The position numbers were made by a program, and so were the translations under genes. Below the pieces are notes generated by a model, which ran no database searches, had not been told where the DNA came from, and worked only from the letters and a program-made list of their open reading frames with translations. A stretch of 64,000 nucleotides of DNA, from the sequence record ON529860.1; one strand, 5' to 3'. Shown here in pieces: positions 1,416 to 31,455 of this stretch. The stretch's first letter is position 1. Every line of letters starts with the position of its first letter.

Positions 1416-1442
1416 AGGTCTCTCGGGGGGGTTGGTCGCCGG

Positions 1443-1688
1443 TTATCCGGTGACGAGGTAGCGAAGGATCGCGAGAAGTTCGCGGTCCGCATCAGGCTGT
1501 TGGGCCTTCTGGTCGATGAGGCGCAGGGCGGCGTTCTTGCGCGCCCGCTGTTTGGCGGCGTGGACGCCGAGAGTCTGCGCCAAGTCGCGCATCTCTGTCT
1601 CGTCCACATAGGCGCCGAGCGCATCCCCATACCGCCGGTTGGCGGGGTAGGTGGCGTAGTCCGGGGCCAGCGGCGGGAGGCCGTCCAT
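1443..1688 (-). CDS. hypothetical protein
   Basis: MDGLPPLAPDY start with a GGAGA SD and TGATG overlap. Confidence 0.6.
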   Translation of the reverse strand: MDGLPPLAPDYATYPANRRYGDALGAYVDETEMRDLAQTLGVHAAKQRARKNAALRLIDQKAQQPDADRELLAILRYLVTG

Positions 1689-1864
1689 CACATGTCTCCA
1701 CAAGGATCGTGCAGGGTGTCGCCCTGGTCGAGGTCCTCGACGAAGCGGCCGTTCAGGAAGCGCCCCGTGGTGGTCTGGCCGTTGAGCCGACGCACGACCC
1801 GCAACTGATGGTCCAGCCAGTAGTAGGGCACGCCCCACGCCTCGCGATAGACCGGCTCGGTCAC
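1688..1864 (-). CDS. hypothetical protein (58 aa)
   Basis: GTG start overlaps the upstream TGA; VTEPVYREAWGVPYYWLDH... Confidence 0.5.
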   Translation of the reverse strand: MTEPVYREAWGVPYYWLDHQLRVVRRLNGQTTTGRFLNGRFVEDLDQGDTLHDPCGDM

Positions 1865-2121
1865 GAGTAGGTCGCGCCCGAAGCCCGGACCACCAGGTCG
1901 GCGACGGGTTTGCCATGAGCGACGATCATCTCGTCGTAGGTGTTGATGTGGAAGCGCATCAGGGCGTTGTCGACCGTCTGCCAGGCATAGGCCTTCCAAG
2001 CGTCTCGGGCGTCTTCGCGGTGGGAGAAGGACCCCACGAAGATGATCTTGCGAGGATCGCGGAAGGCTTCCTCGCGGGGGTGGGGATGCTCGCCCCCATA
2101 GACGTAATAGGAGTCAGGCAT
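1861..2121 (-). CDS. DUF4170 family protein
   Basis: YVYGGE...FRD...VGSF...A..AWKA.A..TVDNA.MRF pattern typical of alphaproteobacterial DUF4170. Confidence 0.75.
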   Translation of the reverse strand: MPDSYYVYGGEHPHPREEAFRDPRKIIFVGSFSHREDARDAWKAYAWQTVDNALMRFHINTYDEMIVAHGKPVADLVVRASGATYS

Positions 2122-3833: not shown

Positions 3834-3922
3834 TGGCGGATGGGGCAGGGATCGAACCCGCGTAACCCTCTCGGGTGTCGACCGCTTAGCAAGCGGCTGC
3901 CTTACCTCTCGGCCACCCATCC
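3834..3922 (-). tRNA. tRNA-Ser(GCT)
   Basis: Cloverleaf, long variable arm, G73, encoded CCA. Confidence 0.95.
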
Positions 3923-3929
3923 GGGGTGT

Positions 3930-4014
3930 TGGCGGTGCGCCAGGGAATCGAACCCTCAACCTTGCGGTCGGCGACGGTTTTCAAGGCCGCTTGTCCCCAT
4001 GGACGCTGCGCACC
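3930..4014 (-). tRNA. tRNA-Ser(TGA)
   Basis: CT-TGA-AA loop, long variable arm, encoded CCA. Confidence 0.88.
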
Positions 4015-4019
4015 GAAGG

Positions 4020-4111
4020 TGGCGGACGGCACGCGATTCGAACGCGTGGGACCCCAGGGGGTCCGCCTGCCTTCCAAGCAGGTGCCTTAAGCCGGGCTCA
4101 GCCAGCCGTCC
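4020..4111 (-). tRNA. tRNA-Ser(GGA)
   Basis: CCTGC-TTGGAAG-GCAGG arm, long variable arm, CCA. Confidence 0.93.
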
Positions 4112-4116
4112 GGTGT

Positions 4117-4334
4117 TGGTGGAGGCGAGGGGATTCGAACCCCCGTAGACGCCGAACCCTCGCATTACCGAGGGCCGATCTCAGGTTTAGAACGCGTGTG
4201 CCGCCCTGACCATCTTCCGCAGGCCAGGGGGTCTATCGTAACGACCCCGTCGATCGGTTGCCTCTGCGTCCCGGATTTACCCGGACCGTTGTTCTGTTCC
4301 ACGGTGCTCATGCCGAAACCCGAGCGACGCCCCC
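4117..4334 (-). ncRNA. compact one-piece tmRNA-like RNA (218 nt)
   Basis: 5' GGGGGCG pairs with 3' CGCCTCC-A-CCA giving G3.U70 and A73; GGTTTCG D-loop analogue; GGGGG-TTCGAAT-CCCCT T-arm; ~140-nt multi-hairpin interior in place of an anticodon arm. Confidence 0.7.
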
Positions 4335-4343
4335 GTGAAGAAA

Positions 4344-4431
4344 TGGAGGATGGTGTGGGATTCGAACCCACGGAACCTTGCGGTCCACCGGTTTTCGAAA
4401 CCGGCGCGATCGGCCTCTCCGCCAACCATCC
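4344..4431 (-). tRNA. tRNA-Ser(CGA)
   Basis: CCGGT-TTCGAAA-ACCGG arm, long variable arm; U73. Confidence 0.9.
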
Positions 4432-4438
4432 AGAACAG

Positions 4439-4627
4439 TCAGGCCGAGGCCGGACTGTAGTTGTCGATGTCGTCGACCCGGATCGCCGTGCCCGCCGCAA
4501 TCTGGCGGTCCGCGCTCAACAGTTCGGCGACCAGGTCGTCGGCCGTGACGGCGGCGCCGGAGGTGGCGAACTTCACGTTCACCAGGCGGCCGTCAGCGAA
4601 CATCTCGTCGATCGCGGCGCGATCCAT
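4439..4627 (-). CDS. hypothetical protein (62 aa)
   Basis: MDRAAIDEMF start with an AAGG SD, lying between tRNA genes. Confidence 0.6.
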   Translation of the reverse strand: MDRAAIDEMFADGRLVNVKFATSGAAVTADDLVAELLSADRQIAAGTAIRVDDIDNYSPASA

Positions 4628-4660
4628 GATAGACCTTTCTGCCGGCCTCGCCGGCGGTGA

Positions 4661-4731
4661 TGGTGGAGACAGTGGGGCTCGAACCCACCAAGGCGTCCTT
4701 GCAAAGGATGCCTGCGCCCTGCGCTGTCCCC
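4661..4731 (-). tRNA. tRNA-Ala(TGC), short D-arm
   Basis: G3.U70, A73, TT-TGC-AA loop, 71 nt. Confidence 0.85.
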
Positions 4732-4768
4732 GTAGGGGTTGAGTGTCAGCCATGCCGACAATCAGTGT

Positions 4769-4844
4769 TGGTCCTGGCACTCAGATTCGAACTGAGCCAT
4801 CGTGCTCCACAAACACGCGCCTCCACCGCAGAGGCTTTACCAGG
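4769..4844 (-). tRNA. tRNA-His(GTG), alphaproteobacterial type
   Basis: TT-GTG-GA loop; A73 and no genomic G-1. Confidence 0.9.
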
Positions 4845-4846
4845 GT

Positions 4847-4934
4847 TGGTCGCGACGACAGGGATCGAACCTGCCCGGCCTTTCGGCCACTACCACCTCA
4901 AGGTAGCGCGTCTACCAGACTCCGCCACGTCGCG
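4847..4934 (-). tRNA. tRNA-Leu(GAG)
   Basis: CTACC-TTGAGGT-GGTAG arm, long variable arm. Confidence 0.93.
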
Positions 4935-4943
4935 ATCGAAAGT

Positions 4944-5029
4944 TGGTGCCCGTCCCCGGACTCGAACCGGGACGCCGCGAGGGCCACGTCTTTTGAGGAC
5001 GCTGCGTCTACCTTTCCGTCCAGACGGGC
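4944..5029 (-). tRNA. tRNA-Leu(CAA)
   Basis: CT-CAA-AA loop, long variable arm. Confidence 0.93.
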
Positions 5030-5039
5030 AGTTGAAAAA

Positions 5040-5126
5040 TGGTGCGGGCGAGAGGATTCGAACCTCCCCGGCACAAAGGCCACGAGTACCTGAGACTCGC
5101 GCGGCTACCAACTTCGCCACGCCCGC
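5040..5126 (-). tRNA. tRNA-Leu(CAG)
   Basis: CGAGT-CTCAGGT-ACTCG arm. Confidence 0.93.
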
Positions 5127-5130
5127 ATTT

Positions 5131-5212
5131 TGGAGAACCCTGGTGGAGTCGAACCACTTGCGCCTGGATTAAAAGCCCAATCCCGGCCACCCGGATTTAA
5201 CGCTCAAGGTCC
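5131..5212 (-). tRNA. atypical tRNA-Lys(TTT)
   Basis: CT-TTT-AA loop and T-arm present; ~10-nt linker before the D-hairpin; U73. Confidence 0.65.
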
Positions 5213-5225
5213 CCTAAAGTTATGT

Positions 5226-5316
5226 TGGTGAACGTGGTCGGACTCGCACCGACGATGAAGGTTGTAACCTAACGGGATTAAGAGCCCCGGCCTCTCGCTA
5301 CTGAGGTGACACGTCC
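5226..5316 (-). tRNA. atypical tRNA-Lys(CTT) with long variable arm
   Basis: CGGGG-CTCTTAA-TCCCG arm; AGGTT/AACCT variable hairpin; TGCGAGT T-loop. Confidence 0.75.
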
Positions 5317-5352
5317 AAAACTGTTGTTCTTCTCCTGAAGACTTGATATGGA

Positions 5353-5423
5353 TGGAGCCGGCGGACGGTGTCGAACCGTCCCATGTCCACTACGAAAGGT
5401 CAGCCCTGCCACCAGGCGCCGGC
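5353..5423 (-). tRNA. degenerate tRNA, isotype uncertain (Arg-TCG or Glu-TTC)
   Basis: Perfect acceptor stem and T-arm with CCA, but the anticodon stem barely pairs. Confidence 0.5.
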
Positions 5424-5429
5424 GTTGTT

Positions 5430-5500
5430 TGGTGCCAAGGGAGGGAGTCAAACCCTCGCTGAACCCATACCAAGGGCTCGACCGATCACCCGGCCTTGGC
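5430..5500 (-). tRNA. tRNA-Thr(GGT), short D-arm
   Basis: AGCCC-TTGGTAT-GGGTT arm, 71 nt. Confidence 0.85.
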
Positions 5501-5508
5501 GTTGATGT

Positions 5509-5583
5509 TGGTCGGAACACCAGGACTCGAACCTGGGACCCCTAGCTTCCCGAGCCAGTGCGCTACCGCTGCGCTACATTCCG
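5509..5583 (-). tRNA. tRNA-Pro(GGG)
   Basis: C1-G72, loop TC-GGG-AA (non-canonical C33). Confidence 0.85.
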
Positions 5584-5592
5584 AGTTGATGA

Positions 5593-5669
5593 TGGTCGGC
5601 GAGGGAGGATTCGAACCTCCGATCCCTCCGACCCGAACGGAGTGACTTACCAGACTTGCCCACACGCCG
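5593..5669 (-). tRNA. tRNA-Pro(CGG)
   Basis: CTCCG-TTCGGGT-CGGAG arm. Confidence 0.93.
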
Positions 5670-5678
5670 ATGGAAACG

Positions 5679-5713
5679 AAAAAAAGGCCCCGGAGGCTTT
5701 GCGCCTGGGGCCT
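5679..5713 (-). terminator. intrinsic terminator (probably conditional, part of an attenuator) upstream of the main tRNA block
   Basis: AGGCCCCAGGCGCAAAGCCTCCGGGGCC-TTTTTTT. Confidence 0.85.
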
Positions 5714-5785
5714 GAAACATCTGCTGTTTTGGGGTTCAGCAGGTGATCGGCCCCTTAGGGCGCCTCACCTGCTTGGTGCCTGTTG

Positions 5786-5917
5786 TTACAGGAAACCTTC
5801 CAGGGAGACGCCACCGGTGGTGGGGGACTTCGTCGACAGTTTCGGCGCATGCGCGAGCGTCGACAGCGCCGTGGCGGCGGTCGAAAGCGGGCTCAGCTTG
5901 TGCGACAAGGTGGTCAC
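5786..5917 (-). CDS. putative 43-aa leader peptide of the tRNA array
   Basis: GTG ACC ACC...TTC CTG TAA between a promoter and a terminator; residues 2-34 use only T/L/S/H/K/P/A. Confidence 0.6.
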   Translation of the reverse strand: MTTLSHKLSPLSTAATALSTLAHAPKLSTKSPTTGGVSLEGFL

Positions 5918-5969
5918 GATGAAGGTCCAGTCCGAAGAAGGAGCGCAAGTGCGCTGTGATGAAGTCTGA

Positions 5970-5998
5970 TCTCTACAGGAAGCTTGAGCGTATGTCAA
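5970..5998 (-). promoter_or_regulatory. sigma70-like promoter
   Basis: TTGACA-N17-TAGAGA. Confidence 0.65.
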
Positions 5999-6020
5999 GA
6001 ACTTCCGAAGAAAAAGTTGG

Positions 6021-6166
6021 GAGAGGGGCCAGATTGGTTACTGACATACCCGGCTTCGACCGATGCCCTAGCCATTCCATCCTACCGGTCCAGTTGTATA
6101 CTCCCAGCGCGTCGCCGCGCCGGCCGTCGGACTTTCAGTTGGATGCGCTTGTTGAGCGACCCTCTC
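6021..6166 (-). ncRNA. candidate 146-nt structured small RNA
   Basis: Ends pair (GAGAGG-GTC with GGC-C-CCTCTC); internal GCGA-loop hairpin; 5' end matches the predicted TSS of TTGACG-N17-CACAAG at 6174-6202; U-tract follows. Confidence 0.5.
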
Positions 6167-6303
6167 GAAACGTCTTGTGCCAGGATCAACGGCAGACGTC
6201 AACAGGAAAATGCACGCGCGCGGCCGAGGGGGAGCGGAAGACCGCGCGCGTGCCGGCAGACCGTCGGGGGACGGGGCCTGGGGTCGTCGGGGGACGGGGA
6301 GGG

Positions 6304-6540
6304 TCAGCCGGCGCGGCGCTTGAGCGTCTCGTGCAGCGGCGGATAGGGGACCGGGGCGTAGATCACCTCGACCAGGCGAGGGCGGCGGCCGGTGCGGATT
6401 TTGGCAGGCAGGGGCACGTTGCGGCGCCGCAGTTCGGCGGCGGCGGCGGCGCTCGCCAGGGAGCCCGACAGGTAGACGCCGATCAGTTCGGCGACCGTCA
6501 GGGTCATCATGCGCTGGGCGCGGGTGGTGTTGTGAGCCAC
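6304..6540 (-). CDS. hypothetical protein
   Basis: GGAGA SD and GTG start. Confidence 0.6.
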   Translation of the reverse strand: MAHNTTRAQRMMTLTVAELIGVYLSGSLASAAAAAELRRRNVPLPAKIRTGRRPRLVEVIYAPVPYPPLHETLKRRAG

Positions 6541-6639
6541 GAGGGTCTCTCCATCTGGATGTGATCCAGGCGAGAGACACGGGCGCGCGCTAGGCGGCCG
6601 CGAAGGGTCTCCGTCCTGGAAGTTACCAGATGCGAGAGA

Positions 6640-6831
6640 TTAGTCGGAGGGCTTGGCCCCGAAGACCGAGGCGATCGCCGTCAAAGCCTTCTTGACCCGG
6701 TTGGGTCGTTGGGTCAGCGCCGAGGCGCAGACCTTCTTGATTTCGTCAAGGGTGAGCGAGGCCGGGTCACGCAGGCCGCGCGCGGCGATCGAGCCGACGC
6801 TGGCGGAGGTGACTTCGGTGGTGGTGCTCAT
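6640..6831 (-). CDS. hypothetical protein (63 aa)
   Basis: ORF immediately after tRNA-Asp; LTLDEIKKVCASALTQRP. Confidence 0.7.
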   Translation of the reverse strand: MSTTTEVTSASVGSIAARGLRDPASLTLDEIKKVCASALTQRPNRVKKALTAIASVFGAKPSD

Positions 6832-6841
6832 GGAAAACCTC

Positions 6842-6916
6842 TGGCGAGTCCAAGGGGAGTTGAACCCCTCTCTCCACCGTGACAGGGTGGTGTCCTAACC
6901 GATAGACGATGGACCC
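6842..6916 (-). tRNA. tRNA-Asp(GTC)
   Basis: CCACC-CTGTCAC-GGTGG arm, G73. Confidence 0.95.
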
Positions 6917-6947
6917 GTATCAGAGGGTCGATCCGCAGGAAGATGCT

Positions 6948-7025
6948 TGGAAGGGCGCCGGAGACTCGAACTCCGCTCACTTGGTTGAAAGCCAAGTATC
7001 CTGCAAACCGCTAGACGAGCGCCCC
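6948..7025 (-). tRNA. tRNA-Glu(TTC)
   Basis: CTTGG-CTTTCAA-CCAAG arm; U73. Confidence 0.9.
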
Positions 7026-7059
7026 ATAAAGCACAGGGCGTCGAACACGAGAGCCGCGA

Positions 7060-7125
7060 TTAGGCGGCGGTCGTATCTCGGCCCTGGAAGGCCTCTCGTT
7101 CGTAGCTGGTCAGACGGTAGGTCAT
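7060..7125 (-). CDS. putative leaderless 21-aa peptide MTYRLTSYEREAFQGRDTTAA
   Basis: ATG lies at the predicted +1 of the promoter at 7132-7160. Confidence 0.4.
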   Translation of the reverse strand: MTYRLTSYEREAFQGRDTTAA

Positions 7126-7131
7126 TTGTCG

Positions 7132-7160
7132 CTTGTATCAGAACTGTCGGTGGGTGTCAA
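7132..7160 (-). promoter_or_regulatory. sigma70-like promoter
   Basis: TTGACA-N17-TACAAG. Confidence 0.7.
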
Positions 7161-7336
7161 GAAGGACGGCGAATCTTTTTGGACCTTGCATGGGGTCGGT
7201 CTTCCTCGGCCTCAGGCTCGGCCGCGTCCCAGGCCATCCACAGGGCCGCGAGAAAAGCAGGCGGACCCATCAAGTCTTCCAACCGCTTCAAGGCCCGGTC
7301 GTTGGCCGCCAGGAAGGCGTCGCCGTATTCAAGCAT
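7157..7336 (-). CDS. hypothetical protein (59 aa, below the track cutoff)
   Basis: GAGG SD; MLEYGDAFLAANDRALKRLEDL...IRRPS. Confidence 0.6.
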   Translation of the reverse strand: MLEYGDAFLAANDRALKRLEDLMGPPAFLAALWMAWDAAEPEAEEDRPHARSKKIRRPS

Positions 7337-7616
7337 CGTGACCTCGGGAGATTTCAGGGGGCCGGCTTTGGCGCGCGGCGTTTAACCGCCGGCGCCTAGA
7401 CGGAGGCAGCGTGCCAGCCCTGCTCGACTGGCCCAGCCCCCTCAAGGCGATGAGTGCCAGGAAAGGCGGCAATGGTCAAGGGGAAATGCGGTGGGTACAG
7501 CTTCAACCGGCCTTGCGGCCTGCGGGTCTTTCGGGCGTCCTGCCCACCGCGCCTACTACGACGCCTTTTTCGGCCCCGGCGCGCCGGAGAGTAAAAATCG
7601 ACGGGTGACCGCTACC

Positions 7617-7772
7617 GGCCTCGCCTGCTGGCCCGTCCCAGCGCCTGACCTTCTCTTCGCGACGCCCTTGTGGGCGTTATGGCCTTCCCGTCCGAAGACA
7701 GACGCCGTGAAGGGTCAGCGGGACCGCATGATCGTCAGCCGCACGGCCAGCGCGGCGAGCGGATCAGAGGCC
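7617..7772 (-). ncRNA. candidate ~156-nt nested-stem RNA
   Basis: Nested pairs CTCGCC/GGCGAG, GCTGGCC/GGCCAGC, GTCCC/GGGAC, CTGACC/GGTCAG; apical cUUCGg hairpin. Confidence 0.45.
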
Positions 7773-7786
7773 TGTCCCGGAAAGAA

Positions 7787-7860
7787 TGGAGCGACTGGTC
7801 GGAATCGAACCGACGTCCCCAGGGTGGAAACCTAGTGCTAAGCCTCTCAGCTACAGCCGC
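7787..7860 (-). tRNA. tRNA-Gly(TCC)
   Basis: TT-TCC-AC loop, U73. Confidence 0.93.
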
Positions 7861-7874
7861 AGTATAAAAGAGGG

Positions 7875-7950
7875 TGGAGCGACTCTCGGGACTCGAACCC
7901 GACCCTGCGCGTTGGCAACGCGTTGTACCCACCCATAATACGTGAGTCGC
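7875..7950 (-). tRNA. tRNA-Gly(GCC)
   Basis: TT-GCC-AA loop, U73. Confidence 0.92.
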
Positions 7951-7963
7951 AGTGGTTAATAAA

Positions 7964-8045
7964 TGGCACGGGTGGAGGGATTCGAACCCCCGACGTATGC
8001 TGGTTTTGGAGACCAGTGCCTTGAGCCAGACTTGGCGACACCCGT
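7964..8045 (-). tRNA. tRNA-Trp(CCA)
   Basis: CTGGT-CTCCAAA-ACCAG arm, G73. Confidence 0.92.
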
Positions 8046-25015: not shown

Positions 25016-25387
25016 CTAGCGGAGACGGACCTGGATGTGGTCCTGCGGGATGATGATCCCCTGACCGGCTTCGGTGGCGCGCGACGTGCGCAGACGGCCG
25101 TAGAGCACCATATCCCCGGCGGAGTCGAAGATCGCGAAGTAGTTGACCTGGACCCAGTCGTTAAGCGCCGGGCCGAAGGCCAGCGGGCCGACCGAGGTCA
25201 GATTGGTGATGCCGGCGGCGACGGTCTTGGCGAGCGTGATCGGGCGACGCTCGTAACCGAGGTCGGCCGCCGGCTCGACGATCAGCGTGCCGTCAGGCTC
25301 GGGTGCGGACGCGAGCAGGCCCAGGGTGAGATCATCACCCCAGGCCGCGAGGATCGCGTCGTGAGTCTTGTACGACAGGTTGGGCAC
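25016..25387 (-). CDS. small fibre-related structural protein (Gp80-like fold; start uncertain)
   Basis: GYERRPITL...LAFGPALNDWVQVNYFAIFDSAGDMVLYG pattern. Confidence 0.7.
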   Translation of the reverse strand: MPNLSYKTHDAILAAWGDDLTLGLLASAPEPDGTLIVEPAADLGYERRPITLAKTVAAGITNLTSVGPLAFGPALNDWVQVNYFAIFDSAGDMVLYGRLRTSRATEAGQGIIIPQDHIQVRLR

Positions 25388-25397
25388 GGTGGCGGCC

Positions 25398-25946
25398 TTA
25401 CTTGGCCTTGCGACCGCGACGGGGAGTCTTGGAGACGGCGGTCGTGTCGGCGGCTTCGGCGACAGCCGAAACGTCAATGGCGTCCTCGTTGTCCAGGTCC
25501 GACGAGTCGTCGGCCGGGGCGGCGGAGAAGTCCTTCACCTCGGGCTCCGGCAGGTGGGCGGCGGCGGCCGCAGCAGCGGCGGCCTTGGCCTGCACTTCAG
25601 CCTGGGCTGCCGCAGCAGCTTGGGCGGCGGCGGCTTCCAGAGCCTGCTGCTGAGCGATCGCGGCGGCCATGGCGGCTTGCTGTTGTTGCAGGGCCTGGGC
25701 GGCCTGCGACGCGGCCGGCGACTGCCCGTTCTCGTCCTTGCCGGTGGCGCGGTCGAGCACGCGCTGCGAGGGCGCGGGGCCTTCCGGCGGGGTCACAGTG
25801 GCGAAGGGCGCGTAGGCGGCCGGGTTCGCCGGGACGAAGCGAGTCCACGAATAGCCGGCGCCGACGACGAGGTCACGCGCGTTGGGGCGGGTGTGACGTT
25901 CGGGGTTGCCGTTGGAGTCGTAGATGATGACGGTGTTGTCGGCCAT
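25398..25946 (-). CDS. Ala/Gln-rich hypothetical protein
   Basis: MADNTVII start; low-complexity coiled region; basic tail TPRRGRKAK. Confidence 0.7.
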   Translation of the reverse strand: MADNTVIIYDSNGNPERHTRPNARDLVVGAGYSWTRFVPANPAAYAPFATVTPPEGPAPSQRVLDRATGKDENGQSPAASQAAQALQQQQAAMAAAIAQQQALEAAAAQAAAAAQAEVQAKAAAAAAAAAHLPEPEVKDFSAAPADDSSDLDNEDAIDVSAVAEAADTTAVSKTPRRGRKAK

Positions 25947-26017
25947 GTGCGGCGTAAATCCTGCGTATCGGGTAGATGCGAAAAAGGGCGCAGTCGAGCC
26001 GCGCGAGACTAGGCTTT

Positions 26018-26047
26018 CTGGCATGAATCCTGCTCAAAGTCAAGATT
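26018..26047 (-). promoter_or_regulatory. candidate late promoter AATCTTGAC-N11-TTCATGCCAG
   Basis: Same bipartite motif and spacing upstream of the portal gene (50007-50036). Confidence 0.5.
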
Positions 26048-26088
26048 TCCAGCACTGAGCGCCAGGAATCACGGCAATCAGAGTCCCC

Positions 26089-26137
26089 TTGACGAGCGAT
26101 CTAATCTCGATCTAAATCCGATCGTCTTTAGATCGAG
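26089..26137 (+). promoter_or_regulatory. plus-strand promoter overlapped by an 11-bp inverted repeat
   Basis: TTGACG(26089)-N17-CTAAAT; CTCGATCTAAA/TTTAGATCGAG at 26106-26137. Confidence 0.55.
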
Positions 26138-26146
26138 AGGAAACCC

Positions 26147-26317
26147 ATGGACAAACTGTATAGCTGGTCGAGCAAGCGCGCCGGCGGCCGCATCACCATC
26201 AAGCATGCGACCGGAAAGATCGTGAACGTGGACGTGATCGAACCCATCAACGGCAAGGTCGTCGCGATCGACAAGGACGGCCGGTCCTATGAACTGGTCG
26301 TCGCTCCGCCGATTTGA
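26147..26317 (+). CDS. 56-aa beta-rich protein, the only supported plus-strand CDS
   Basis: GAGAGG SD; MDKLYSWSSKRAGGRITIKHATGKIVNVDVIEPINGKVVAIDKDGRSYELVVAPPI. Confidence 0.75.
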   Translation: MDKLYSWSSKRAGGRITIKHATGKIVNVDVIEPINGKVVAIDKDGRSYELVVAPPI

Positions 26318-26353
26318 TCCACATATCCACAACAGCCCCGCTTCTGTGGATAA
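26315..26353. promoter_or_regulatory. three DnaA-box-like sites
   Basis: TGATCCACA 26315-23, ATATCCACA 26323-31, TGTGGATAA (reverse complement TTATCCACA) 26345-53. Confidence 0.6.
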
Positions 26354-26367
26354 GTCAGGATTCCTGA

Positions 26368-26396
26368 TTGACGCTCCAGGGCGACCCCGCTACATC
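26368..26396 (+). promoter_or_regulatory. sigma70 promoter of the large RNA
   Basis: TTGACG-N15-GCTACATC matches the Caulobacter TTGACG...GCTANAWC consensus. Confidence 0.8.
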
Positions 26397-26401
26397 CCTA
26401 A

Positions 26402-26913
26402 TCGTCGCTTCGGAAACGGAGCGGCCGGCAACCGGGCCTCGGCCCTACTAGCCGGGCTTCCAAGGGTATGCGGCCTCCGGGCTGATCCCACGGGAGTTGA
26501 GACCGGACGCCGGGGTGACCCGGTCCATCCGCCGAGACATGGTATCTCAAGGCTGCCGCAGCCCAAGAGACCACCCCTCGGACCGCCCGAGGCCGTAAGG
26601 CTGGAGGTCAGGAGTCTCAGGAGATCGGTCAGCAATGATCCGGTCGACCCTAAGGCGTCGCGGACTTCGCATCCTCGGGTGCGGGAGCCAAGATGTAGAG
26701 ATGCGGGTCTAGGCGTCACAGCTTCGACCTCCAGGTATGAGCCCCTCCACGGCGACGTGAAGGAAGCGTCAGCCTCACCTTCTTCGGGGAAACCTGATGC
26801 CCTGGTGAACTCTCCTGCCCAGACTGTAATGGTCGAAAGCAGGCGCGAAGTCGGACCAGAACCAGATTGTCGGGAAGGCCCGCCTCGTATCTTCGGATGC
26901 AGGCGGGCCTTTT
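26402..26913 (+). ncRNA. ~510-nt large structured non-coding RNA of unknown family
   Basis: Bounded by a promoter and terminator, no plus-strand ORF of 60 aa or more, multiple GNRA/UNCG hairpins and long-range helices. Confidence 0.7.
26876..26913 (+). terminator. intrinsic terminator (plus strand)
   Basis: AGGCCCGCC...cTTCGg...GGCGGGCCT-TTT. Confidence 0.8.
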
Positions 26914-26925
26914 GCGTTCTGCGCC

Positions 26926-26958
26926 AAGAAAAAAGGGCCGCCCCTAGAGGCGGCCCTT
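26926..26958 (-). terminator. intrinsic terminator (minus strand, convergent)
   Basis: AAGGGCCGCC-TCTAGG-GGCGGCCCTT-TTTT. Confidence 0.85.
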
Positions 26959-26963
26959 GTGGT

Positions 26964-27899
26964 TCAGGTCGACACCGTGAACGTCACCTCGACGGGAGGC
27001 GAGGTCCGCGTGATGGTGGTCGCGGTCAGGGTGACCGTGAAGTCGCCGCCGACGTAGCCGTGGCGGTAGAAAGACAGGCGCTGGATGTTCTGATAGACGA
27101 ACCCATCCGTCGTTCCGTCGACAATGTCGATGCCCTCGGACGGATTCTCCAGGTGGACCTTGCCGGCGGCGTCGGTGCGCAGCGTCAGCACCAGGTCGTT
27201 TTCCGGAGCCTTGGCGGTCACGGTCAGCGTAATCGCATAGAGTTCCGTCAACTTCTTGCCCGAGACCTTGTTGGTCAAGCCGAAGCTGAACGGGATGATC
27301 CAGTCGCGCCCGGCGGCGTTCGGCAGGGCGTACACACCCTCGACCGGCGTGACGACCGTCAGATCGTTCGGGTAGCGGGCGGCTCCGGCCAGTTCGATTT
27401 CGCCGTTCGAGGCGACCGTCATCCCGCCGATCGGATTGCCGGAGCCGTGGGTCAGGTAGCCTTCGGGCGACTGGAAGGCCGGCTCGGCGTCCGGCGTCAC
27501 CTCAGGCTCGACAAGTTCAGCCGCCGCGACGACGGTGATCTCGTAGGTTTCCTCGACCGTTTCCAAGCCGTTATGGGCTCGGACCGTGACGGACAGCGGG
27601 TCCAGGGCGGAGGTTTCGACCGCGCCTGCCACAAAGCGGGTCCCATCTAGGGCGATGCGCCCGCCGGCGTCGTCGATCAGGGTCAGGGTGGCGTCGGGGT
27701 CGGACAGGTAGACTTCGCCTACCGGCGCCCCCGCCTCGGATTCCGCCGCCAGCGTGCCGCCGCTGTAGAACAGGCGCAAGGGCAGCCGGCCCTGGCTTCC
27801 GGCGCCGCTCATGCGGCCCGAGATACGGCGCGGCGTGGGGTCGCCCGGAGAGGCTTTCGCCAGGGCGGAGAGATTGATACGGCGAGTACGCACAGCCAT
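26964..27899 (-). CDS. cadherin/Ig-like domain putative virion protein
   Basis: ESEAGAPVGEV.LSDPD...LIDDAGGRIAL.G.......SVTVRA......EETYEITV cadherin-like repeat. Confidence 0.7.
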   Translation of the reverse strand: MAVRTRRINLSALAKASPGDPTPRRISGRMSGAGSQGRLPLRLFYSGGTLAAESEAGAPVGEVYLSDPDATLTLIDDAGGRIALDGTRFVAGAVETSALDPLSVTVRAHNGLETVEETYEITVVAAAELVEPEVTPDAEPAFQSPEGYLTHGSGNPIGGMTVASNGEIELAGAARYPNDLTVVTPVEGVYALPNAAGRDWIIPFSFGLTNKVSGKKLTELYAITLTVTAKAPENDLVLTLRTDAAGKVHLENPSEGIDIVDGTTDGFVYQNIQRLSFYRHGYVGGDFTVTLTATTITRTSPPVEVTFTVST

Positions 27900-28112: not shown

Positions 28113-28541
28113 TTAGGCCTTCGAGTTCGGGGCGGCGAACGCGTAGTACGACACCGTGCCCGTGGTCGGCTCGACGTCGGCGAAGACGCGGATGCCGGCG
28201 GCGTCGGCGTCAGCCGCAGCCAGGGTGGCGGGATCGAACTTCAGCACGAAGGTCTTGCCGGCGACGGCAGTGACCGAACCACCGGGGGCGTCGACCGGGT
28301 TGGCGCCAGCGGCGTCAACGGTCTGGACCTTGAGGGTGGCGTCCGTGGCGGCGTCGACGACGATGACGACGTCGAACGGCGTTTGGCCGTACAGGTTCTT
28401 CAGGTCGCCGCGACCAGCGGTCAGGCGGTGAAGGTCGACGACCAGGCCGCCGGGGCCATCAGCCGTGACGGCGGTGGCGCGATCATCGATCGAACGGAGC
28501 GCCAGAAGGGCGTCATAACCGTGCTTGATCTTGGAGTTCAT
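28113..28541 (-). CDS. minor capsid protein (phiCbK gp69-like)
   Basis: MNSKIKHGYDALLAL...AVTADG...GRGD...FDVVI...F.PATL...DADAA...YAFAAPNS; directly after the major capsid gene. Confidence 0.85.
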   Translation of the reverse strand: MNSKIKHGYDALLALRSIDDRATAVTADGPGGLVVDLHRLTAGRGDLKNLYGQTPFDVVIVVDAATDATLKVQTVDAAGANPVDAPGGSVTAVAGKTFVLKFDPATLAAADADAAGIRVFADVEPTTGTVSYYAFAAPNSKA

Positions 28542-28617: not shown

Positions 28618-29553
28618 TTAGGCGACGACGGCAGCCTTCTTGATGCCCCAGACGCGAGCGGCGGCGCGGCCCGACAGCACCGCGAGGCTGATCAGCCACT
28701 CGATGCGGGTACGGTAGACCGGCTTGTCGTTGACTTGGCCGAGGTCGTCGACTTCCATCACGCCGTTTTGCAGGCCCATGACGCCCGAGTCGCCGATGTT
28801 CACGACGTAGATCGAGGTGCCGACAGCGGCGCCGCCACCGGGGTTCGCTTCGTTGAAGTCGATGACCTGGGTGTTGGTGTCGTCGTAGTCGGTGGTCAGG
28901 ATGGGCAGGTCGTTGTAGAACGCGATGCGCTCACCGAACTCGTTCTTGTCCCAGGTGATGAAGCCGGCAACCGACGTCTGGCGCGAAGCGGCCGACAGCA
29001 GGTTACGCATGCGCTTCGACATGATCAGGTGCGTGGCACCGTCAACGGCGTCGATGGCTTCGTCCAGGACTTGCAGCGACAGAGCGTCGCCGCCGGCCGA
29101 GGCGCCAGCCGGGATCAGTTGGTCGCCGACGATGCGCTTGCGCAGGCCGTCGAATTCACGCGGATCAGCTTCCGAGTCGCCGGTGATGATCTTGCCAGCC
29201 AGGAACAGCGAGAGGGCCTTGACCTTCATCTTTTCCTGCATGGTGCGGATGTTCGCGCCATGGGTCTTGATCAGCGCCTTGTCGACGTCCAGGTCGCCGC
29301 CGACGATCTTCAGAACTTCGACCTGCGAGTTGATGACGCCGACGCCGTTGCCGTAAGCTTCGTTGAAGCCACGGAACGCAACGCCCGGCAGTTGGCCTTC
29401 CTGGGTGTAGGTGTACGAGCCACCCGGAACATCCATGAACGGCAGGACCTTCAGGAGGTCCGGATAGGCGAAGAGTTCGATGATCGCCGAACGCTTGACC
29501 TCGTCGTTGCCCATCGCCAGATCGGCGGCTTCGAGCAGAGTGAGAGCAGCCAT
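28618..29553 (-). CDS. major capsid protein (phiCbK gp68-like)
   Basis: MAALTLL.AA..A.GNDEVKR...VAFRG.NE.Y...GGDLDVDK...EFDGLRKRI...RTRIEWL..LAVLSGR.AARVWGIKKAAV. Confidence 0.95.
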   Translation of the reverse strand: MAALTLLEAADLAMGNDEVKRSAIIELFAYPDLLKVLPFMDVPGGSYTYTQEGQLPGVAFRGFNEAYGNGVGVINSQVEVLKIVGGDLDVDKALIKTHGANIRTMQEKMKVKALSLFLAGKIITGDSEADPREFDGLRKRIVGDQLIPAGASAGGDALSLQVLDEAIDAVDGATHLIMSKRMRNLLSAASRQTSVAGFITWDKNEFGERIAFYNDLPILTTDYDDTNTQVIDFNEANPGGGAAVGTSIYVVNIGDSGVMGLQNGVMEVDDLGQVNDKPVYRTRIEWLISLAVLSGRAAARVWGIKKAAVVA

Positions 29554-30885: not shown

Positions 30886-31455
30886 TTATTCGGCGAGACG
30901 CTGCTTCAATGTCTTGACAGGTTTGCGGTTCTTCCGGTCAATAACGAAGCCATAGCGGGCCATGTCGTTTTTAGACTTCGCCTTGTGGCACGGGTCCTTA
31001 CATAGTATCTGGACGTTCTCCGGCTCCCAGAACGACCAATCCCCAAAAGCCATGAAGAGGGGGATTACGTGATCCGCCTCCCATGCGTCGGACATATACT
31101 TCCAGACAGTACCGCACTCGGCGCATTCACCTTGGTCGCGGAAGAAGACATGCTGGCGCATGACCGCAGGATCAGATCGGAGCAAGTAGTTGCCGACGCA
31201 ACGCTTCGAACACCACGACCGCCGCAGGTTGAGCGTGCCATCCTTCTTCAGAATCCGGACGCCGCACCAGCGGCAATGGCCGGGCGGCTGGCGGTTGATC
31301 TTACTGGGATGGGTTCGGTGGTTATAGGACACAGGCAGTTTCGAGCCGCGCGGCTTCTTGGCGCGGCGAGGCCGGCGCGAGGTTGAGCGGCGGCGGCTAA
31401 CAGTACGGGACGTCGTCTTCGGAGGAGAGGCGCGCCGCGCGGGGCGGCGGGCCAT
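30886..31455 (-). CDS. HNH endonuclease with Arg/Lys-rich N-terminus
   Basis: CRWC...CSKRC zinc knuckle; RDQGECAEC...WEADHVIPL...NVQILC..CHKAKS. Confidence 0.9.
   Translation of the reverse strand: MARRPARRASPPKTTSRTVSRRRSTSRRPRRAKKPRGSKLPVSYNHRTHPSKINRQPPGHCRWCGVRILKKDGTLNLRRSWCSKRCVGNYLLRSDPAVMRQHVFFRDQGECAECGTVWKYMSDAWEADHVIPLFMAFGDWSFWEPENVQILCKDPCHKAKSKNDMARYGFVIDRKNRKPVKTLKQRLAE

Follow-up and report, generated by a model that had tools for sequence, protein, structure and literature searches.

Comparative evidence for a large structured RNA gene, probably of a new family, in the head module of Brevundimonas jumbo phages

What is encoded in a 646-bp gap without annotation that interrupts the head module of Brevundimonas phage vB_BpoS-Papperlapapp (ON529860.1; 356,874 bp; Dolichocephalovirinae)? 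We analysed a stretch of 64,000 nucleotides (hereafter the window), whose coordinates are those of the ON529860.1 record and of which the 661 bases around the locus are 100% identical to this phage. A sequence-only reading of the window had proposed that the gap carries a member of a new class of large phage RNAs, a proposal that gained support from covariation across eight lineages, from the lack of a conserved open reading frame (ORF) and from the lack of an Rfam 15 match. Overall, we favour as the likely reading a stand-alone gene for a structured plus-strand RNA of ~515 nt, accessory to the phage, that would act in trans. The comparison of homologues leaves little doubt that a real structured RNA gene lies here, and this gene very likely represents a family not described before; that the RNA would be a trans-acting folded particle is reasonably probable.

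BLAST against cultured phages returned the region only from seven jumbo phages of Brevundimonas pondensis, which fall into three clades (A to C) at ~97%, 83% and patchy 80% identity, and BLAST of the divergent members described below against the same set gave no new hosts. Exact-motif scans of IMG/VR (three motifs), the JGI metagenomes (one motif) and the GTDB genomes (one motif) yielded chance matches only, as judged with nhmmer or with the covariance model R1 introduced below; because every match was of this kind, the family is not detectable there by these motifs. A search of IMG/VR through the neighbouring 208-residue protein reached only Caulobacter-type phages without the RNA. The productive route was to search a large protein collection with this neighbour protein and then to scan the contigs of its relatives with an nhmmer profile of the RNA, which revealed full-length RNAs in contigs L113-L124 and L127-L129 and a 5' fragment in L132; their position and divergent orientation never varied. 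An identical RNA occurs in several of the contigs, leaving ten distinct metagenomic sequences, which together with the isolates form eight lineages, the most divergent pairs being 52-58% identical.

The hairpins that RNAalifold predicted were consistent between the first seven sequences and a set of ten drawn from the five reliably alignable lineages. The helix list was fixed from these predictions, and covariance models for the 5' third (R1), the middle (R2) and the 3' third (R3) of the RNA were built on a five-lineage seed; the three divergent lineages, which stood outside model building, were then aligned with R1-R3 and are all full-length and contiguous. The 5' domain has 39 pairs formed in 96.1% of the alignment cells, 21 of them changed on both sides. 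The middle domain has 52 pairs (94.3% of cells paired, 33 changed on both sides), and the 3' domain has 41 pairs (92.7% and 26, respectively). Over all three models, 80 of the 132 base pairs keep pairing through changes on both sides. Slid controls, in which the 3' partners were moved by one to three columns, gave 3-12 double-changed pairs per domain and 29-54% pairing. The long-range helices P1 and H4 are not spanned by R1-R3, and their pairs were counted by script. The pairing is also strand-specific. Since G.U cells far outnumber A.C cells (208 versus 36) and a minus-strand reading lowers pairing from 94.4% to 84.5%, the plus strand is the RNA; the GNRA loops, as already pointed out from the sequence, read correctly on this strand only. 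The minimum-free-energy z-score against shuffled sequences is -3.1 on the plus strand and -1.6 on the minus strand.

The gene and its upstream region comprise the following features:

26315-26353, both strands: three 9-mers resembling DnaA boxes by motif, TGATCCACA at 26315-26323 (plus), ATATCCACA at 26323-26331 (plus) and TTATCCACA at 26345-26353 (minus)
26368-26396, plus strand: predicted RpoD (sigma-73/70) promoter by consensus match, with the -35 element TTGACGC (26368-26374), a 14-bp spacer and the -10 element GCTACATC (26389-26396)
26402-26916, plus strand: RNA gene of ~515 nt, counted from the predicted start and including the U-rich tail, supported by homologues, covariation and the folding z-score
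26404-26425, plus strand: H1, the 5' hairpin of 9 bp with the GNRA loop GAAA (GUAA in other lineages); 96% of cells paired, with a G-C/A-U exchange at a base pair
26426-26433, plus strand: 5' strand of the closing helix P1, CGGCAACC, whose partner is 26865-26872
26434-26445, plus strand: H2, the near-invariant hairpin GGGC-CUCG-GCCC, within the invariant block 26431-26445
26456-26497, plus strand: H3, a long bulged hairpin; 10 of 16 pairs changed on both sides
26498-26503, plus strand: 5' strand of H4, TGAGAC, pairing with 26614-26619
26504-26531, plus strand: H5, a hairpin with a GUGA loop; 9 of 10 pairs changed on both sides
26532-26581, plus strand: H6, a four-segment hairpin supported by covariation and conservation, with the near-invariant loop block GCCGCAG at 26555-26561
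26582-26613, plus strand: H7, a hairpin with a GUAA loop; 8 of 10 pairs changed on both sides
26614-26619, plus strand: 3' strand of H4, GTCTCA, pairing with 26498-26503
26623-26645, plus strand: H8, a hairpin with the GNRA loop GCAA; 6 of 10 pairs changed on both sides
26655-26696, plus strand: H9, a long hairpin with a CUCG loop; 10 of 15 pairs changed on both sides and 98.9% of cells paired
26697-26744, plus strand: variable region whose pairing differs by lineage on comparison, holding the clade-specific GACCTCCAG arm
26747-26760, plus strand: H11, a hairpin with the GNRA loop GCGA or GUGA and the stem CACG/CGUG, CGUG/CACG or CCUC/GGGG, depending on the lineage
26775-26808, plus strand: H12, a two-segment hairpin with an invariant GAAA loop (GGGAAAC, 26787-26793); 9 of 10 pairs changed on both sides
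26814-26843, plus strand: H13, a hairpin with 6 of 9 pairs changed on both sides and an inner part that is only 69% paired
26856-26872, plus strand: invariant unpaired block CCAGAACCA (26856-26864), followed by the 3' strand of P1, GATTGTCG (26865-26872), recognized by conservation
26874-26916, plus strand: predicted terminator or 3' protective hairpin of 17 bp with a UUCG loop (26874-26912) and a U-rich tail

The long-range helix H4 encloses H5, H6 and H7 and covaries to GGAGAA/UUCUCC and GUGGC/GUCAC in divergent lineages; it takes the place of the TTGAGA/TCTCAA helix drawn in the sequence-only reading. A second long-range helix of that reading, 9 bp between CTGGAGGTC and GACCTCCAG, holds in clade A only; in every other lineage it is either weakened or disrupted. 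Its six hairpins fared better, as the five capped by GAAA, GUGA, GUAA, GCAA and CUCG are conserved with compensatory changes; the sixth, CCTCGG/CCGAGG, is not a conserved pairing, and CCUCGG pairs instead with the upstream CCGAG (26532-26536) to form the outer stem of H6. The cUUCGg terminator that had been placed at the end of the RNA corresponds to the 17-bp UUCG hairpin and its U-rich tail, which has 99% of cells paired and compensatory changes in the apical part, and which fails the T-run rule of the scan tool. Of the roughly twelve hairpins in the fold, six are capped by GNRA loops, which stay GNRA in most lineages. The invariant blocks are 26431-26458 (including 26431-26445 and 26450-26458), 26555-26561, 26787-26793 and 26856-26874. 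Inspection of the alignments by eye revealed no palindromic loop-loop covariation, no pseudoknots were detected, and no target complementary to the invariant CCAGAACCAGAT block was found in the window. Altogether, the locus combines strand-specific compensatory pairing with a predicted promoter and terminator of its own that are conserved with the RNA.

A more distant relative, missed by nhmmer, was recognized at 27 bits with the covariance model of the 5' third in a 70.7-kb JGI contig (3300072490; L130). Its RNA (1425-1960, minus strand) is shorter, at ~450 nt, and has a folding z-score of -7.6. The promoter layout is the same, and the contig possesses a TTATCCACA box, the 5' hairpin, the P1 strand and equivalents of H2, H3 and H5. 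The 5' hairpin of this relative is capped by UUCG. Alternative folds are hinted at by an 11-nt stretch, spanning the P1 strand and H2, whose complement forms part of the terminator stem of the same RNA.

Several points weigh against the reading of the locus as a gene for an accessory, trans-acting RNA. The alignments behind the three large covariation counts were fitted to the proposed structure, and the eight lineages are related, so that the shuffle control, in which none of 500 column shuffles per domain reached the observed values, overstates significance. Because the model alignments are fitted to the structure, the script count was repeated on a MAFFT alignment of the five lineages made from sequence only, in which 145 pairs, long-range helices included, are 95.3% paired with 26 double-changed pairs, compared to 3-5 in slid controls. 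P1, which is 100% paired in this alignment, varies little, and its support consists of three informative changes only (two lineages with G-C in place of A-U, and another with G-C in place of G.U). Moreover, RNAalifold on one alignment preferred 26425-26429/26451-26455 over P1; as this alternative has no double compensation and carries a C.A mismatch in one lineage, P1 is tentatively favoured. No consistent fold was obtained for 26697-26744, the case for DnaA binding at the upstream boxes is one of motif identity alone, the transcript, its ends and its timing are sequence predictions, and no result points to a particular partner or activity. Set beside these points, the new RNA family is well supported, with clear gene boundaries and ~130 supported base pairs.

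Might the region encode a protein instead? Such a gene could be read on the plus strand, where the GenBank records of Kabachok and Domovoi annotate coding sequences of 212-214 amino acids over the homologous stretch, or as a minus-strand ORF, and in clade A frame +0 and one minus frame are indeed open through the region. In Papperlapapp, frame +0 is open throughout the RNA (ORF 26289-27650), and a minus-strand ORF spans 26390-26719. Against this, all six frames have at least two stops in clades B and C, for which reason we conclude that coding capacity is not conserved; the gaps between clades have lengths of 1, 2, 4 and 6, and substitutions show no codon periodicity (by codon position, 38/25/31 for clade A versus B and 63/73/78 for A versus C). 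The Arg/Gly/Pro-rich translation of frame +0 is typical of a spurious high-GC ORF. A protein-coding gene is therefore scarcely credible. The statement that the stretch holds no ORF is wrong for Papperlapapp, which has two open frames, and right in that no frame is open in all clades; nor is the region conserved merely as a minus-strand ORF, the minus frames being stopped in clades B and C. The two annotated "hypothetical proteins", KABACHOK_04620 (L004:1490-2128) and DOMOVOI_05190 (L005:1490-2134), are very probably spurious high-GC ORFs, judged so because their frame is not conserved in the other clades.

The next question is whether the RNA belongs to a known family. At the gathering score, cmscan of the whole window against Rfam 15 found transfer RNAs (tRNAs) only. 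At E <= 10 over 26200-27050, the matches were mostly low scores over the two terminators, in addition to a 12-bit match at the 5' edge of the RNA and a 19-bit match to an unrelated long non-coding RNA, with no family within the RNA; at E <= 1, the RNA was free of matches in four divergent homologues and in L130. ARAGORN found neither tRNA nor transfer-messenger RNA (tmRNA) in 25900-27100, and tmRNA, including the two-piece alphaproteobacterial form, was matched by neither ARAGORN nor Rfam. The Rfam models of GOLLD, ROOL, OLE, HEARO and raiA had no significant match in the window and homologue scans, and RNase P covariance models were not listed at E <= 10 for the RNA or at E <= 1 for the homologues. 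Models of group I/II introns had no Rfam match, and the RNA lies between complete genes with its own predicted promoter and terminator, so there are neither flanking exons nor an interrupted gene. The earlier failure to place the RNA among RNase P, signal recognition particle, 6S, tmRNA or intron RNAs thus agrees with Rfam 15 and ARAGORN, both empty within the RNA. The literature on non-coding RNAs of phiCbK-type phages yielded nothing relevant, and the genome paper reports no tmRNA and leaves an RNA at this locus unmentioned (PMC10070969).

A very divergent RNase P RNA, two-piece tmRNA, intron remnant, 6S RNA or GOLLD/ROOL RNA could still share with our RNA a P1 that joins the ends, many GNRA loops and a single-stranded block before the 3' strand of P1, and the phage has 24 tRNA genes. 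Set against the empty scans of the RNA, its homologues and L130, such an origin has a very slim chance. Bacterial RNase P RNA (type A) has a terminal helix that joins the ends, a multi-domain structure, GNRA loops and a single-stranded stretch by the 3' strand of P1. In contrast, the present RNA has a core of ~430 nt between the P1 strands and no identified P4-type pseudoknot, and the likeness is a tentative one. 6S and other protein-sequestering RNAs resemble it in having a promoter of the abundant type and a transcript that is stable, protected by hairpins and active through its shape, all of which are predictions here; compared to 6S RNA, it is much larger, is multi-branched rather than a single interrupted helix, and has no Rfam match.

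To our knowledge, large and intricately folded non-coding RNAs are rare and few are known in phages, and each such class so far (RNase P, self-splicing introns, OLE, GOLLD and ROOL) proved to be a ribozyme, the core of a ribonucleoprotein or, unexpectedly, an assembly of RNA alone. Like the RNA described here, ROOL and GOLLD are phage-encoded, stand-alone and several hundred nucleotides long, with an elaborate structure supported by covariation and no known protein partner. They are mostly found near tRNA islands, whereas our RNA lies in the head module, ~18 kb from the nearest tRNAs at 3837-8045. It further differs from them in the alphaproteobacterial hosts, the ~65% GC and the consensus RpoD promoter with DnaA-type boxes. 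Large ornate RNAs such as ROOL and GOLLD can form RNA-only multimeric cages (bioRxiv 10.1101/2024.12.08.627333). In our RNA, palindromic kissing loops were not detected. Sharing the category of ROOL and GOLLD, and neither their models, their genomic setting nor their host clade, the RNA is best placed in a new family.

How would the RNA be made? The predicted promoter, placed correctly by the sequence-only reading with TTGACG at 26368 and GCTACATC at 26389, is the only full match to the RpoD consensus on both strands of the 64 kb, where 0.01 would be expected. The Caulobacter RpoD consensus is TTGaCgS / GCtANAWC (PMC8144410). In every lineage, a -35 element (TTGAC[GC], or TTGCGG in two lineages) and a -10 element resembling GCTA[CA]A.C lie at a constant distance from H1. 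The boxes upstream are clustered, as 3 of the 9 ATCCACA heptamers on both strands of the 64 kb fall within these 39 bp. About 15 bp upstream of the -35 element stands TGTGGATAA, which on the opposite strand reads as the "perfect" DnaA box TTATCCACA, with a spacing fixed in nearly all lineages, and one or two forward boxes lie farther upstream; at a similar spacing in the distant L130, TTATCCACA is in forward orientation. The 9-mers follow the DnaA-box consensus, and TGATCCACA is identical to the Caulobacter G-box (PMC4285127). DnaA-box matches are found close to the promoter and conserved in position, as a DnaA-regulated promoter would have them. Whether host DnaA, bound at the three boxes, modulates transcription of the RNA is a tentative proposal that we hold at somewhat under even chances, and the inverted-repeat arrangement would equally suit a dimeric regulator of phage or host. 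For the XRE regulator of phiCbK, a candidate for comparison with the boxes, PMC10688885 states no binding motif. The boxes suggest a link between host replication control and a phage RNA, one not described before. They sit between the RNA promoter and the divergent 208-residue gene and could serve both.

Three position-conserved DnaA-type boxes beside a strong promoter also bring to mind a phage replication origin, at which the boxes recruit host DnaA and the transcript serves as an R-loop or primer in the manner of ColE1 or T4. The RNA II of ColE1 is a structured replication pre-primer of similar length (~0.5 kb) with a strong promoter, and DnaA boxes lie near such origins. In our RNA, however, pairing is under selection along the whole length, as are G.U pairs and GNRA loops, and a strong, conserved intrinsic terminator hairpin is predicted to end the transcript. 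Nor does the locus have the signature of an origin, as the cumulative GC skew has no turn near 26 kb, no AT-rich unwinding element is evident at the locus, and the element is lost in one lineage. We regard an origin as quite unlikely.

The genes around the RNA were examined for a further hint of its role, and the relevant neighbours are as follows:

25016-25387, minus strand: Gp80-like head protein, head module
25398-26024, minus strand: phrog_10854 protein, the 208-residue neighbour, head module, divergent from the RNA
26147-26317, plus strand: 56-residue gene, the left neighbour of the RNA, present in only some lineages
26958-26933, minus strand: convergent terminator of the 311-residue gene, found by terminator scan, outside the RNA
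26964-27899, minus strand: 311-residue gene, the right neighbour of the RNA, from the ON529860.1 annotation
28113-28541, minus strand: phrog_427 protein, head module
28618-29553, minus strand: major capsid protein, head module

Both genes that flank the RNA fall within the minus-strand head module, with a minor capsid gene on one side of the RNA and a head-associated gene on the other. No Pfam domains were found in the flanking proteins, and the idea that the 311-residue neighbour is a capsid paralogue was rejected. The flanking genes vary among the isolates and metagenomic contigs, as in a variable accessory island, and no gene that co-occurs with the RNA as a candidate partner was found.

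The facing terminator at 26958-26933, also foreseen in the sequence-only reading, stands back to back with that of the RNA and parts the RNA from the capsid transcript, and the RNA is predicted to be transcribed against the operon. One could thus take the locus for a cis-acting element whose RNA product is irrelevant: a long leader, or a transcriptional roadblock or insulator that serves the head operon. An insulator needs terminators only, yet ~130 pairs over 450 nt are kept by compensatory change, and a leader would call for a plus-strand gene downstream of the RNA, where none is present. This explanation has little to recommend it.

The position inside the head module instead brings up packaging or head assembly, which the sequence-only reading had put first among its suggested roles, ahead of a decoy or a regulator. 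In this scenario, the RNA would be bound to the prohead, and perhaps be present in virions, either like the pRNA of phi29 or as a length or scaffold factor for the heads of 53 x 363 nm. The RNA occurs only in phages with 312-357 kb genomes and extremely elongated heads, and GNRA-rich compact RNAs can form multimeric rings. The scenario is weakened by one close relative that retains a remnant only. In this relative (L112; Logan contig ERR13731165), whose neighbour protein is 79% identical, a single deletion left a 3'-terminal remnant of the RNA gene; neither promoter nor boxes remain in the gap upstream of its 182-residue gene, and most of the RNA is missing too. Homologues had been expected at the syntenic site of phiCbK-like phages, but phiCbK, CcrColossus, CcrPW, Bajun and several metagenomic relatives have a short gap or an unrelated gene there and no RNA, although the four named phages possess the head module and prolate heads. 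Furthermore, the promoter is of the host housekeeping type and is oriented against the late operon rather than being of the late-operon type, the locus is a variable accessory island, and no palindromic loop-loop covariation was seen by inspection. The pRNA of phi29 is a trans-acting structured phage RNA and the only well-established RNA part of a packaging motor. Our RNA is about three times longer, unrelated in sequence and without an Rfam match, and it belongs to jumbo siphoviruses, one relative of which has dispensed with it or lost it, whereas phi29 is a small podovirus. Because of the remnant in a close relative, the absence from phiCbK-type head modules and the host-housekeeping promoter, we consider an assembly or packaging role improbable. 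An accessory, trans-acting role is favoured over one in core assembly, given that one lineage has lost the gene, that its flanks vary and that phiCbK-type phages lack it.

For the favoured accessory, trans-acting RNA, we propose the following course of events. Host RNA polymerase with RpoD would make the RNA without phage factors, and hence it is probably made early in infection, while host DnaA at the upstream boxes possibly controls its transcription. Hairpins stacked on both sides of P1 would protect the ends, and the GNRA loops may dock into helices to give a compact tertiary fold, on which the few invariant, mostly unpaired blocks would form a functional surface. The RNA would then act in trans by its shape, as neither an antisense nor a cis-acting element, by binding or sequestering a protein or RNA partner or by self-assembly. 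Any single named role, be it decoy, scaffold or cage, has at most a modest chance of being correct. A more far-reaching and rather doubtful view sees in the RNA the first of a new class of large alphaproteobacterial phage RNAs with a tertiary fold and DnaA-gated synthesis, forming a higher-order particle or acting as a ribozyme. If the gating were true, the phage would read the cell-cycle state of its dimorphic host, distinguishing a swarmer from a replicating stalked cell; the particle, made of RNA alone or with protein, would act on a host or phage macromolecule. The hosts are culturable (B. pondensis LVF1, with seven isolated phages), which opens function and three-dimensional structure to direct study, and the related metagenomic contig with its natural gene loss provides a ready comparison.

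The small gene to the left of the RNA promoter (26147-26317, plus strand) appears to be a real gene, with a homologue of 64% identity in L124 and a copy of 58% identity elsewhere in phage Bajun. Its stop codon overlaps the first DnaA-type box, and it comes and goes directly upstream of the RNA promoter. As a partner of the RNA it was rejected, since the two do not co-occur: clades B and C have the RNA without the gene, and Bajun has the gene without the RNA. Between this gene and the divergent 208-residue gene lies the highly conserved block GAATCCTGCTCAAAGTCAAGATTTCCAGCAC (26025-26146, with an equivalent in all relatives), which is probably the promoter or leader of the latter. In lineages without the 56-residue gene, the GAATCCTGCTCAAAGTCAAGATTTCCAGCAC block shares the DnaA-box region with the RNA promoter. 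On the other side of the RNA, Domovoi (L005:2160-2485) is missing the 311-residue gene and has ~330 bp instead, with two copies of a ~35-nt repeat and a duplicated terminator-like hairpin.

Elsewhere in the window, a cluster of at least 10 tRNA genes occupies 3837-8045 (minus strand), ~18 kb from the RNA; for the phage as a whole, 24 tRNA genes were reported (PMC10070969). The segment 12001-18000 has an unusually high GC content of 0.73-0.74, compared to ~0.65 elsewhere, and a negative GC skew. An HNH nuclease gene (30886-31161, minus strand) is located between the scaffold and capsid genes and the RNase H gene, and the equivalent place in phiCbK also has one.

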